Shown: positions 1,108 to 7,498 of the stretch, in pieces
Numbering within the stretch: the first letter of the stretch is position 1
Layout of the letters: every line of letters starts with the position of its first letter
Source: Lenisia limosa
Taxonomy: Eukaryota > Protista > Breviatea
Direction of reading: 5' to 3'
DNA: 47,859 bases
Assembly (NCBI GenBank): GCA_001655205.1
Contig: LPNZ01008512.1
Coordinates: 1 to 47,859 of the forward strand
Notes under the pieces: model-generated
The model's database searches: none
What the model saw: only the letters and a program-made list of their open reading frames with translations
Told to the model about the DNA's origin: nothing
Position numbers and translations under genes: made by a program

Positions 1108-2774
1108 ATGCCTAAGCAGTTCCTTTTCACCTCTGAGGCGGTCAACATTGGTCATCCTGGTGAGTTTGTCCACTCACTTGTTCAACTTCTAAAAGATTGC
1201 TCAATCTCCTTCTAAATTCCATAGACAAGATGGCTGATCAAGTTTCCGATGCCGTTCTTGATGCTTGCCTTGCCCAGGATCCTCAGTCTAAAGTTGCCTG
1301 CGGTATGCTTCCAATACTCCTAGATTGTTGTAACCTTCTTTAGAAACTGCTACTAAGACTGGTATGGTCATGATTTTTGGTGAAATCACTACCACTGCTC
1401 GCGTCGACTACCAGCGTGTGGTTCGTGAATGTGTGAAGCGCATTGGTTACGATGACGGCAAGAAGGGTTAGTTTCATCAATTTTTTATTGCGACTTACAT
1501 TCAAGGTTTCGATTACAACGCCTGCAACGTTCTTGTTGCTATTGAGGAGCAGTCACCTGATATTGCACAGGGTGTTCACATCAATAAGAATGATGAGGAT
1601 GTTGGTGCCGGTGATCAGGTTTGAGGGGCTTTCCTCTTCCTTCTAGAGATGATTTATGCATAACTACTCGTAATAGGGACTGCAGTGGAGCAACATTTCA
1701 TTTCTTAGGGTATCATGTTTGGCTACGCTACCGATGAGACTCCCGAGTGTATGCCCCTCACTCACCGTCTTTCCGAGGCTCTCTGCAAGCGTCTTACTGA
1801 AGTTCGTGAGTCCGGCGAGTGCGGCTGGATGGGTCCCGATTGCAAGACTCAGGTTTGTGATTAACTTATGATTTGTTCAGATCAATCTTTTAGTCAGTCG
1901 TTGGACGCCTTTCACACCATTAGGTTACAGTTGACTACGAGGATGACAACGGTGCCATGAAGCCCCTCCGCGTCCACACCGTTGTTGTTTCCTGCCAGCA
2001 CTCTGAGGTGGGCCTTTTCTCGTTTTTTCGCGTCATTATTCTGGTCTATTTCGACACAAAGATGTAATAATCTGTCTTTTCTTACCATTATAGGAGACAA
2101 CCAACGAGCAGATCCGCTCTGAGATCATGGATAAGGTCATCAAGGAGGTCATTCCCGCCAAGTACATGGACGACAAGACCATTTACCACATCAACCCCAG
2201 TGGCCGTTTCACCATTGGTGGACCTCAGGGTGATGCTGGTCTTACTGGCCGTAAGATCATTATCGATACCTATGGTGGATGGGGTGCCCACGGTGGTGGA
2301 GCTTTCTCCGGCAAGGACCCTACCAAGGTTGATCGTTCCGCTGCTTACTACCTCAGATGGGTATGATGGATGCAGTTTTTTTCTTTTTTTTTTCTTTCTA
2401 AGATAGTTCATTTCCTGATACAACAGGTTGCCAAGTCTCTCGTGAAGGCCGGCCTTTGCCGTCGTTGCCTCGTCCAATCCTCTTACGCCATCGGTGTTGC
2501 CAAGCCTCTTTCCATCAACATCACCACCTACGGTACCTCTGAGAAGTCTGAGGAAGAGCTCCTCGCTATCATTGAGAAGAACTTCGACTTCCGTCCTGGT
2601 GAGCCAACCTTCCTATCGAGCCTCGTTTTACCCTCCATGTCTAACCCATTAGGATGCATTATCAAGGAGCTCGACCTCCTCAAGCCCCGCTATGAGGTCA
2701 CTGCCCGTTACGGCCACTTCGGCCATGAGGGCCCCGAGTTCACCTGGGAGCACCCTAAGAAGCTTGTCTTCTAA
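1108..2774 (+). CDS. MAT: S-adenosylmethionine synthetase (canonical MAT type), 9 exons
   Basis: Spliced translation contains [40 protein letters not shown] and YGHFG. There are 8 GT-AG introns (first 1160-1224) and a TAA stop at 2772-2774. Confidence 0.98.
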
Positions 2775-3038: not shown

Positions 3039-6000
3039 TCATTTTGGACCGGTGGCATCCGAGAGTGGTTCAGTCCCTGGAGTAATGTGAGAAGTAACGC
3101 AATTAAATACCAGGGTTGTGGCTCAGCGGTGAGATGTCCTCTTGGGGATAGACCTGAACAGGTGAAATATTAAGCCGGCATAAGGCTTATATCTTCGAAT
3201 TCAGTGGTCACATAGTCACATACCTGAGGGTGAGAAGTACCAAAGAACTGCCTTCCAGATTCACCATGCGTAAAATTTGGTAAACTCTGAAGAGTAAGCC
3301 TTACAAAAAAAATATTAGAGGAGTGATAGGAGTGATAGGGGTATTATATATACTAAGTAGTATAGAGAGCAATGAGAAAGTAAAAATAAGATGCATCTGG
3401 CCGAAGCCGTCCACCCCATCACGCTTATAAGAGATATTGGATTATAGTATAATATTAATTCACCCAATCATTTGCCTTACAACTCTGTGCACACAGCTTT
3501 CTGCGTGCCTCCCCAGCATACCTTATATTATATACTATAGTAGTACTATATCATATATTATATTACATTATATTAAATATAATAATCATATTTATTATAA
3601 AAACAAGAAATGTAACAGCCACTAACCTGCGGAGGTTCCCTTTGTGGAAGTCCCTGCTGCTCCAGAATGCTTAACTGCTGATGATCCATTTGCTCTAAAA
3701 CCACTGGGTGACTAAACAATAAGTAGAAAAGAAGAAACACTCATACTTATTCAACACGCTTTCCTCTCGAAGTATATGTGCACTATGCTGCTGCTGGAGA
3801 TGGCGAAGTACTGCTTCCTGACTGAAAGGGCCGGCAAGCGGGTCCTGAATCTAACGGTGAGACTTGATAGAAGTGTTTCTTTCCTTACCTGTGGTTCTGG
3901 GAGTGAAAGAAGGGTCTCAGGTTGGACTGCTGTTGCTTGCAAAACAGGTTGAGGCTTAGATGCAACCTGATAGGGTAAGGTAGGTGGAGAGAACAAATGG
4001 AAGAGCCAGAACATGCATACGAAAGTAGCTTGGACTGCGGGGGTGGTAAATGGTTCTGACGGGTTCTACAATAGTAAGCTGGGCGTTATGCTATGAGTCT
4101 TACCAGTGGGGTAGGTATGATAGGAGGGAACTGGGGTTGGCTGAACGAAAACACGGGCGGTTCTACAGCATAAATAAACAATACAATACCGTGGTTACCT
4201 GGGGGTGGAGCTGCAGGAATATAATTTCCCTTGTCTAAAGGCTAAAAGTGTTAAACCAAGTTTTGAAAATATACCCTTACAGTATGTTTGGGCTTTTCCG
4301 GTACCACAGTTGGTTGAGTTGGTAATGGGAAAACATTAGTCATTGTTGAGAGATTGGTCTTATCAGGCCCAGGCACTGTGCTCACTGTTAGCCCAAGCAA
4401 GCTCACCTGTGTTGTGAAGATTGGTCAAAACATGTAGAATGAAAAAGGAAATATAAAAGTCAAACAAATGGGTTTCCCTCAAACCTCATTTCTAATAGTG
4501 TCGTAGAGGAATATGCCGCCACCAATGTCCCCATCTCCACAAGGCAGTGCAAGTTGCAAGAGATTTGTGGATGTTTGTCTGGACGCATTACAGTGCAATA
4601 GAAAGCATACTTTGCTGACCAAACTCCCAGAGTAGCAAAGAGGCGCGAGGTGGTTCCTCGGTAGGAAAACGCCACCACATCCTATTTCATGAGATGTCAA
4701 CTTGAACTCAAGTTCTTTTTATTGTTGCTCACGTTGCCTGGTGCTGGGAGATTGCTAGCTTTGATAGGGGGGTTCACTTCGGAATTCAGAGTCAAACGAA
4801 CCACTTCAGGGTGAATCATGGACTCAATTGTGGCGACCACTGTCATTCGATTCACCTGAGGAGCAATCATTAGATATCTGGGTAACCAAAACTGAAATGC
4901 CAAAATATTAATCATCCAAAAGACATTCTTCGGAATACGTAGGTTTTTTAGAGGGACGGAAGGTAGTCCAACCACAACCTACATAAACTTCATATTTTGA
5001 TCCAATGGCCAATTTGTTGTACGTGGTACAATGAACTGAAAGAAGAGCTTCAGTTGAACTAATAATCAGGAGTGGCACCAAATCGTTTTTTTCTTGAGGG
5101 GGCGATTCTGAAATATGAAAATACTTTGTCAACAAACCTGGAACTGGATTGTATGGGTGCAGACCAGGAATAGACGGGAGCGAACCAGGCCCAAGTGAAA
5201 GAGGGACGATTTCCTCGTCTTGAATTCCTGGGTGGTAAATTGAAAACAGGCAACCTTTGTTGTTCCCAGAAGTGATATTTGACTGCGGTTGTGATTGTGA
5301 TGCAGTAGTCTGAGGAAAAGAAGATAGATCCGAAGCAGTAGTGCTATACTGTAAAATGCCTCATGGCATTCTGTAACTCACTTCAACGAAGGATACAGAG
5401 ACGGAAGCTCCGGAATACAGCTTTGTCCACTCAAGATTGCATTTGTCAAGGCGTCAGGGTCGATTTCTGGTACAGGCAACGGTGGTAAACTATCGCGTCA
5501 AAAGTGTTGCAAGGTTGGAATCAGGGGAGTAAAAATATGGTTGTTAGCCGACTTTTCGAAAGGGTCTTCATTTGCGAGAGGGGGTAAGATAGTCGCATTC
5601 AGAGGCATCACATTAAGACTTGGAATGCTGTCTTCTTCGTTCTAATGTGTGGGGTGAAAATATACAGTGTCCGGGAATAAGTCTTGACTGATTTTCCTAG
5701 GGAAATCACATAGCTAATCGGTCAAGACTTATCCCGGTCTCTGTGTATATAGTATGTAAAATATGCAAACACACTATCAAATTGATCTTTACCTGGTCAG
5801 GAGCAGAGATAAATTTGCCCAAAACAACAACGCGGGAAACCGCGACTGAAGTTGCACTCGCAACTAAAAATATTACTACAACATACCCGAATGATAGTTA
5901 GTGTTAAGAAGTTTGGTGAATCACTTTCCCACTTTCTTGAAGGTTCTCAGCGTGAATCTGTCTCCTTGGGAGATATCCTAAATATTGTTACACTGTTTGG

Positions 6001-7498
6001 TAACAATAAACAACCCACCATGAAGAGCAACTTCATAGGTTTTTCCATTGCGAAGGGTGTAATATGGATCTGTAATCTGAAACAGTTAAATGAATTTTAG
6101 AACGGCAATTTAACTTCAAATCCCCCAAACTTGACTAAGATCTTGTCTGTCAACAAGAAATAATTCTGGGTAATCTGGGAGCCTTTCTCTAGGAGGGTTA
6201 ATTCAACCAATCTTGACTTCACCTGATATGAGCAACTTTTGTTCCTTTGGGCTGTACAACAGGCTGACCTTCAACCAGCAGAAGGGGTGGAGATTGACAA
6301 ACTACACATTTCACAAAATAGGATATTTATCTTACGATTTGGCTGCTCTGGGGCGGCTCGCTTACTGCAAGCGGTCTGGAGGTAAAGATTAAAAAAACTG
6401 TTTTTTTAAAATGGAATATTACAGAAGAAAAATCCACCAACTTCAAAAGAGCCTCCTTCATCAATAATGGTTCTCCTTTTGATGAAGTTTCTCAACCACA
6501 CCGTACCACCACATCGCTTAATCCGCGCAGCAACTGGTGTCACATTAATTATAAACAAAGAAGTAAAAGGTATTATACGAGAACAACCTACGAATTGCGG
6601 GTGTGTCATTCTTCCGCGGTCGACCAGCGAACTGAAATTGTAAACAATTCTGAAGGAACCAGCTTGATATCCCACACACCTCCTTCGCAACTGCAGAGAG
6701 GATTGACGGGTTGTCCCATTGTGATTCATTTCGGAGCTTGCAGGTACGGACAATTTCCTAAATAGCTAAGTTACAGTATTTATGCAACAATAATAAAATA
6801 AGTTCTTCCATTTCTTCTTTTTCAATGAACAACCCCGAAAGCAGTTAAAAAACAAGATGTAATTTTTTTTTGACTTGAATTTTGCTGTTAGACGTAATTC
6901 ACATTTTGCTACTATTTTTTTGAAGCAGCCCCATTCTGACTTAATCATCTTCACAATAGTGGGCACACCATCGTGATACTTTTGGCATGCATCAATACCC
7001 CTTCCCACTTTCTCCTCTTCCTCAGTGAATGTGTTTGGACGACCAAGGCTCACAGGCTTAGATGCTTCATATGTCAGTCAGAAAGCAAGGGGGTAAGATT
7101 AACGAGTGGGGTGCCTGCCATCTCTCACAAAAACAGTTGTAAAAGAAGCGCAACGATATATTTAAAGTAATAATTTTTACCCACCCACTTAAATCACGGT
7201 CTTCATCCGCATGAGCTTTCAAAACACGTTTGTAAATGTCATACAAAGTAGAGCAAGGAAGATCATGGCCTGTTTGAAGGAGTTGCCTCCAAACTTGCCT
7301 CACGTTGCATTTGAAGTTCCCACTTTTTTCTAAGTTAGCACAACATTCAGTATAGACGGCATCAACAGCGAACTTGGCAACTTCGACACCATATCTTCTA
7401 TGTGGACCCCTTTCTTTTTTCCTTTCAACTCTCCTCACCTTCTCCTCTTCTTCTCCTCGTTGACCTTCATTAAGAAAAGGAAAATAATTGTGTTCCAT
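3039..7498 (-). CDS. Multi-exon protein: pogo/CENP-B-type double HTH + unknown region + inactive trypsin-like domain + Pro/Gln-rich tail
   Basis: HTH1: RRYGVEVAKFAV...LPCSTLYDIYKR. Tc5-like HTH2 after splicing: GRPNTFTEEEEKEIVRTCKLR...AVAKE...GTVWLRNFIKRR. Trypsin-like part: LLSVHC...HPEVVRLTL...PGNDVVAFSY...LLQLALPCGDGDIGGGIF...VSLLGLT. Exon phases could be joined to a TGA at 3039-3041. A few internal junctions are ambiguous. Confidence 0.7.
5665..5743. mobile_element. MITE-like 79-bp inverted-repeat element (Tc1/mariner-type end) inside an intron
   Basis: Left arm CAGTGTCCGGGAATAAGTCTTGACTGATT (5665-5693) versus the reverse complement of the right arm CAGAGACCGGGATAAGTCTTGACCGATT (5716-5743): 25/29 match. 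The left end is TA|CAGTG. The right flank is TGTA, so the TA duplication is imperfect. Confidence 0.55.

Follow-up and report, generated by a model that had tools for sequence, protein, structure and literature searches.

A spliced gene of Lenisia limosa with a putative pogo/Tc5-type helix-turn-helix module and a conserved C-terminal domain of no assignable family

The window analysed here, which means the whole stretch of 47,859 nucleotides, comes from the breviate protist Lenisia limosa (positions 1 to 47,859 of contig LPNZ01008512.1, forward strand; our C8512). The contig belongs to assembly GCA_001655205.1, which comprises 49 Mb in 11,727 contigs, and the same DNA is present in the ENA metagenome assembly ERZ3820729 as NODE_167. 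The window is rich in introns of just 30-80 nt. An initial annotation, made from the sequence of the window, had placed at 3039-7498 a domesticated pogo/CENP-B DNA-binding module with two helix-turn-helix (HTH) segments, fused to a dead trypsin-like protease. The gene at this locus is encoded on the minus strand. Extension of splice logic from a set of conserved exons gives a model of 21 exons in which every intron is GT-AG, running from the ATG at 7498 to the TGA at 3041-3039 (709 codons). The ends of the model coincide exactly with the annotated span. Each exon is stop-free in its own phase, split codons never form stops, and the phases are compatible at all junctions of the 21-exon chain.

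Gene structure and the diverged second copy

The conserved exons were recognized through a diverged second copy of the gene in the same assembly. This copy is split over three short contigs, of which C1299 (ENA NODE_4799; L008) carries exons 1-4, C9766 carries exon 5, and C9410 carries exons A-D. It supports nine exons, five in the HTH half (exons 1-5) and four in the protease-like half (exons A-D). The two copies resemble each other only in blocks that end at GT and start after AG, and the sequence between these blocks is unalignable. Wherever both flanks can be read (introns 1 and 2 and the intron between exons C and D), intron positions and phases are identical in the two copies. The donors of exons 3, 4, 5, A, B, and D also lie at the same sites in the second copy. 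The exon C/D intron, for example, measures 32 nt in the window vs. about 170 nt in the second copy. These comparisons bear out the spliceosomal introns proposed in the initial annotation.

Residue identity between the copies ranges from 61 to 88% across the nine exon blocks. Summed over these blocks, which cover both halves of the gene, nonsynonymous divergence (pN) is 0.16, and synonymous divergence (pS) is 0.78, a saturated value. Thus, the copies are old, and both the HTH and the protease-like half are under strong purifying selection. The locus is a real, spliced, intron-rich gene under selection. Only two copies of it were found in the 49-Mb assembly. Single-copy status and purifying selection had been proposed as marks of domestication; selection was confirmed and dispersed copies flanked by terminal inverted repeats (TIRs) were not found, but the gene occurs twice rather than once.

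The second copy could be a paralogue, or it could be the orthologue of a related strain that is present in the same culture at lower abundance. Residence of both copies in the same genome is favoured because they share young repeat families. Read coverage of the second-copy contig NODE_4799 is 18.8 vs. 34.4 for NODE_167 (about half), and the second-copy contigs break at poly-C runs.

The remaining exons of the model are predicted. Exons 6-8 form a linker between the two conserved halves, and exon E follows exon D. No second-copy match was found in the assembly for exons 6-8 or exon E, and exons 6-8 and E-M have no conservation support. The 3' part of the gene is a chain of predicted exons with consistent GT-AG ends, comprising exons F-J (4241-4199, 4162-4104, 4065-3889, 3850-3747, and 3711-3627) and exons K-M (3286-3224, 3153-3111, and 3076-3039), the last of which ends at the TGA. 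These exons encode a tail that is rich in Pro and Gln, as the initial annotation had described it.

Two dispersed repeat families are present within the locus. A repeat of about 160-220 bp lies at 3343-3564 (minus sense) inside the 340-nt intron 3626-3287, toward the 3' end of this intron. Copies that are 83-94% identical occur at L002 1563-1684, L004 1222-1361, and L025 ~560-620, and a DNA search returned more than 4,000 first-look candidates genome-wide. The repeat is also present in introns of the second gene copy. The other family is a palindromic dispersed element of about 90 bp, resembling a miniature inverted-repeat transposable element, at 5657-5749, with 20-nt inverted arms at 5674-5693 and 5716-5735. 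It sits just upstream of the proposed acceptor of intron 5, and further copies are found at L002 1352-1439 and on C9139, C4467, C8638, and C11166. Intron 2 of the second gene copy contains a copy with 89% identity. Downstream, the 3' end of an S-adenosylmethionine synthetase gene (2370-2774, plus strand, with an intron of about 57 nt) converges on the 3' end of the studied gene. This synthetase end appears to differ from the human sequences, which, together with the small genome and the short introns, argues against a human origin of the contig.

Fold and ancestry of the N-terminal module

The HTH half of the gene is encoded by exons 1-5. Exon 1 (7189-7498) contains the ATG and an acidic/basic low-complexity start, followed by a three-helix domain that is the candidate for the first HTH and whose last helix begins at the P.STL motif. 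This exon is 68% identical to the second copy over 76 residues, and its donor (gtgggt, phase 1) occupies a position common to both copies. Exon 2 (7009-7064; ..KPVSLGRPNTF.EEEE.), with 88% identity to the second copy, supplies a GRP linker ahead of the second HTH. The predicted first-helix region of the second HTH is found in exon 3 (6680-6757; 73% identity, donor site shared), which is followed by the short exon 4 (6592-6631; ..GRPRKNDTPAI; 77% identity). Exon 5 (6442-6533; ..RIKRCGG..W..NF.KRR..) encodes what is predicted to be the closing helix of an HTH_Tnp_Tc5-type domain, and it shows 61% identity to its counterpart on C9766, with which it shares the donor site. The motifs named in the initial annotation were all recovered on the minus strand, with STLYDIYK in exon 1, WLRNFIKRR in exon 5, and GRP..TEEEEK continuing into EIV across the GT-AG intron from exon 2 to exon 3. 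The GRPRK sequence of exon 4 was also considered as an AT-hook. This candidate was rejected, since the second copy reads SRPRE and an AT-hook is therefore not conserved.

All sequence, fold, and profile comparisons were run exon by exon, on single exons or contiguous pieces. An AlphaFold2 model of exon 1, computed jointly with its second-copy counterpart, contains three helices (residues 33-59, 66-76, and 82-103) at a predicted local distance difference test (pLDDT) score of about 88. Fold searches with this exon (Foldseek, VIA) lack specificity, as is usual for three-helix bundles. The neighbours include the DNA-binding domains GT-1, StbA, Fur, Mu transposase I-beta, and IstA, mixed with unrelated helical proteins, and CENP-B (1hlv) appears among the matches at rank 33 with an E value of 4.9. 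The nearest protein-language-model clusters (Atlas) are HTH_21, HTH_28/29/32, and HTH_ABP1_N, the last of which is the family of the fission-yeast CENP-B homologue. This neighbourhood lies among transposase-type HTH families and is treated as a lead only, because the scores are just 0.78-0.84.

A more direct comparison is provided by a pogo-type transposase resident in the same genome. An open frame of 472 residues on contig C9521 (L110:622-2037) carries an HTH_Tnp_Tc5 domain (residues 170-222) and a DDE_1 domain. Members of this resident family are found on C9521, C11431 (L111), C4648 (L117), and about 37 further contigs. In a collection of 5.8 billion proteins, the 472-residue protein has one distant relative only (P0011, 28% identity). 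A 472-column profile was built from the resident transposase and this relative, and length-matched peptides from other parts of the window (n = 160) served as decoys. The best alignment of exon 5 places its W..R helix inside the Tc5 HTH, at columns 208-219 (hhalign P 0.0096), and 1 of the 160 decoys scores as high (empirical P ~0.01). Exon 2 aligns to the PLGRK motif at columns 161-172 (hhalign P 0.12), with 15 of the 160 decoys as high (empirical P ~0.09). About 30% of the decoys also land within the profile's DNA-binding region, so what counts is that these two exons are placed exactly, motif on motif. Additionally, a tblastn search with P0011 selects the W..F..R stretch of exon 5.

The gene and the resident transposase also share the order of their elements, with a first HTH, a GR(K/P) linker, and a second HTH that closes with W..(I/F)..R, and it is to these regions that exons 2 and 5 align. 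Unlike the gene studied here, the transposase has a DDE_1 domain, belongs to a family with at least 40 matches, and does not carry the C-terminal domain of this gene. Identity between the two is too low for BLAST.

Several results weigh against a transposase origin. Exon-by-exon hmmscan returned no Pfam family for any exon even at E 10, including HTH_psq, CENP-B_N, and HTH_Tnp_Tc5, and no relevant PDB sequence match was obtained for exon 1 or exons 3-4. Among 1.84 billion representative proteins scanned in full by HMMER, exon 1 matched nothing but itself, the second copy, and spurious immunoglobulin-repeat proteins; these last were rejected as relatives, their matches arising from repeated short stretches. 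Exons 1, 3, and 4 receive no support from the pogo profile. The alignment of exon 1 is non-significant (hhalign P 0.26; 38 of 160 decoys as high), and exons 3 (hhalign P 0.2; 137 of 160) and 4 (124 of 160) are aligned in the wrong place. Furthermore, the supporting alignments of exons 2 and 5 span 8-12 columns on the motifs that had prompted the hypothesis, so the support for a transposase HTH is moderate rather than strong.

These results would also fit a generic helical domain without transposase ancestry, whose GRP and W..F.KRR likeness arose by chance or convergence. In its favour are the lack of a significant Pfam, PDB, or Foldseek match, the failure of exons 1, 3, and 4 to align to the pogo DNA-binding region, and Atlas scores below 0.9, a range that shuffled sequences reach too. 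However, two of the four exons for which hhalign gave a P value place their best alignment on motif-equivalent columns of a 472-column profile, a second pogo protein selects the same stretch of exon 5, and the element order is that of the resident transposase. We regard the generic domain as unlikely, though a serious competitor. A transposase-type HTH ancestry is somewhat favoured on the sequence evidence. The two HTH segments of the initial annotation thus keep their motifs and gain weak, correctly placed profile alignments, but their designation as typical of pogo/CENP-B finds no significant match in Pfam or the PDB.

The conserved C-terminal domain

The second conserved half of the gene is formed by exons A-D, followed by the predicted exon E. 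Exon A (4983-5107) is beta-hairpin-like, ends in ..LLSVHC.. with the proposed catalytic His, and is 79-85% identical to the second copy. In exon B (4733-4855; ..HPEVVRL..), Glu occupies the proposed Asp position, and ..HPE.. is retained in the second copy, ahead of a masked stretch. Exon C (4611-4681; 87% identity) precedes the 32-nt intron. Exon D (4485-4578; ..PCGDGDIGGG..) has Ile at the proposed nucleophile position, where the second copy has Val (..EDVGGG..). The proposed last strands of the domain are assigned to exon E (4281-4406) from a stop-free frame and GT-AG ends. The three motifs noted at the outset (LSVHC, HPEVVRL, and GDIGG, on the minus strand) are all present, and the pattern of a retained His, a Glu for Asp, and a replaced nucleophile is conserved in the second copy, with Val for Ile. 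These exons encode a conserved, probably beta-rich domain of about 180 residues without an assignable family.

The His-Asp-Ser triad is incomplete in both copies, with His present, Glu in place of Asp, and Ile or Val in place of Ser. Because neither copy has the Ser, the domain would not be a serine protease even if it had a chymotrypsin fold. As far as can be read from its sequence, the domain cannot be an active serine protease and would be at best a pseudo-enzyme.

The initial annotation had gone further and assigned 4300-5110 to an HtrA/Trypsin_2-like fold. Under this proposal, exons A-E would encode a chymotrypsin-fold pseudo-protease, fused to the transposase-derived HTH and acting as a sensor that binds a peptide or ligand. 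The three triad-like motifs do lie in conserved exons in chymotrypsin order, His in exon A, Glu in exon B, and Ile in exon D. Their spacing, 33 residues from His to Glu and 66 residues from Glu to Ile, is within the range of small chymotrypsin-fold proteases, and the His, the Glu, and a hydrophobic replacement of Ser are all kept in the second copy. The likeness to HtrA/Trypsin_2 proteases extends to an acidic residue followed by hydrophobics and to a G-D-x-G-G loop followed by hydrophobic strands, and replacement of the nucleophile is a feature shared with known pseudo-proteases. In a profile built from 83 DegS/DegP/DegQ-like protease-domain sequences, hhalign places the Ile of exon D on Ser201 of DegS (probability 0.3%; 20 of 120 decoys, or 17%, score as high) and exon C on the strand just before the Ser, collinear with exon D (23% of decoys as high). 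An AlphaFold2 model of the contiguous piece from the end of exon 8 through exon A contains two strands that form a beta-hairpin ending at the His, at a low-confidence pLDDT of 44.

Against this proposal, hhalign puts exons A, B, and E in the wrong places on the HtrA profile, and no exon scores above the decoys. The same holds for HMMER with filters off (hmmsearch --max), in which no exon exceeds 1,468 decoy peptides. At E values up to 10, Pfam searches of the exons matched no peptidase family, Trypsin and Trypsin_2 included. Sequence searches of the PDB, which contains thousands of serine-protease chains, gave no match for any of exons A, B, D, and E or for two-sequence profiles. The Atlas search with exon D returned nothing usable. 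By our estimate, the six frames of the 48-kb window should contain about two GD.GG pentapeptides by chance. A six-frame scan of the 49-Mb assembly for PF13365 (Trypsin_2) gave no candidates; this carries little weight, since bacterial contigs were missed too. Unlike HtrA/Trypsin_2 proteases, the gene has no PDZ domains and gives no profile, PDB, or fold match. By our reading, its His motif also falls one residue short of the T-x-x-H spacing seen in DegS and trypsin.

What remains of the HtrA/Trypsin_2-like fold is three short motifs in a fitting order and at fitting distances. The profile searches suggested in the initial annotation, for HTH_psq and HTH_Tnp_Tc5 as well as Trypsin_2, gave no exon-level match. 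A chymotrypsin fold for this domain is accordingly doubtful, and so is its role as a pseudo-protease sensor. The composite version, in which a transposase-derived tandem HTH without a DDE remnant would be combined with a dead chymotrypsin-fold domain to make a factor that binds DNA and senses a peptide or small ligand through its pseudo-protease cleft, is more doubtful still. No description of an architecture joining tandem HTH segments and a pseudo-protease was found. The C-terminal half is better described as a conserved domain of no assignable family.

Architecture of the gene and its meaning

The model joins the two conserved halves through exons 6-8 (5641-5553, 5489-5382, and 5343-5138), a Pro/Ser/Gln-rich linker predicted from stop-free frames, GT-AG ends, and matching phases. 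The junction between exons 5 and 6 would span intron 5 (5642-6441), which has GT-AG ends and compatible phases. This junction, together with exons 6-8 and E-M, comes from splice logic alone, which counts against a single product containing both halves, and no transcript-derived protein for the gene was found in the protein databases searched; word searches with exon 1 and with a 150-residue open stretch at 4911-5360 returned neither mRNA-derived nor other relatives. Two adjacent genes, an HTH protein encoded by exons 1-5 and a C-terminal-domain gene starting near 5608, could instead have been copied together by segmental duplication. The only in-frame ATG of the linker lies at about 5608, and intron 5 is, at 800 nt, the longest of the model. 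Exons 6-8 lack conservation support, and the second copy is spread over three short contigs. However, a canonical donor stands exactly at the end of exon 5 in both copies, and conservation stops there. The phases match over every junction down to the single stop at 3039, exon 8 contains no in-frame ATG, and pN is similar and pS saturated in both halves. Two separate genes are, on this balance, rather improbable, and the self-consistent model of a single transcript that includes both halves is probably correct.

The locus shows traces neither of a transposon nuclease nor of element ends. No Pfam match to DDE_1 was obtained on stop-free pieces or exact exons of the window, tblastn of the window with the resident pogo transposases returned no DDE remnant, and none of the 40 DDE_1 matches considered lies on this contig, in a genome that carries at least 40. 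The inverted repeats flanking the gene are poly-T/poly-A runs only, and no TIRs were found. The absence of DDE_1 after the HTH segments and of long TIRs, both asserted in the initial annotation, is thereby corroborated. With just two copies, neither TIRs nor a DDE domain, and a pN far below pS, the gene is not a transposon copy. A decaying transposon copy or pseudogene is very improbable: pogo-type elements are common in the genome and dispersed repeats lie inside the locus, but intron positions are conserved between the copies in a gene of many introns, and the 709-codon chain is intact.

Domesticated pogo proteins mostly keep a (dead) DDE_1 domain and a dimerization region, or they add KRAB or zinc-finger domains. 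The gene resembles domesticated pogo transposases in its N-terminal tandem-HTH layout, its GRP linker, and the W..F.KR of its last helix. It is likewise an intron-bearing host gene that has few copies, lacks TIRs, and evolves under purifying selection. Unlike these proteins, it has no DDE remnant and couples its HTH module to a conserved domain of unrelated type, and its exons do not match HTH_psq, CENP-B_N, or HTH_Tnp_Tc5 individually. Known cases, including CENP-B, the fission-yeast proteins Abp1, Cbh1, and Cbh2, and vertebrate JRK, TIGD, POGK, and POGZ, are covered in two reviews (PMC4231638; PMC7386202).

The reading we favour, to which we give about even weight, is a protist gene that combines a pogo/Tc5-derived DNA-binding module with a conserved domain of no assignable family. 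The gene would be restricted to this protist lineage, with an old, diverged second copy. Its N-terminal module of about 190 residues would consist of two HTH units, most likely derived from a pogo/Tc5-type transposase that lost its DDE nuclease, and the source family may be the type that still resides in the same genome. The module would be followed by a disordered Pro/Ser/Gln-rich linker, the conserved domain of about 180 residues, and the Pro/Gln-rich tail. The product may bind specific DNA sequences as a transcription or chromatin factor, whose conserved C-terminal domain would bind a protein or ligand and whose low-complexity regions would mediate interactions or activation. Of the transposase-derived factor first proposed, the spliced, non-transposon gene stands, and an HTH origin is plausible from the alignments of exons 2 and 5 and the three helices of exon 1, while the dead trypsin-like protease is unsupported.

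On present evidence, the locus holds a clearly bounded orphan gene, whose proposed ancestry is plausible but has weak support, rather than a demonstrated novelty. The architecture would be new if the C-terminal domain were a dead protease. If the transposase ancestry is correct, the gene would represent another independent domestication of a pogo-type DNA-binding module, from the poorly sampled breviates. In this case, the HTH part alone would have been kept and joined to a conserved domain of no assigned family. Such a gene would illustrate how the DNA-binding domains of transposons seed lineage-specific regulators.

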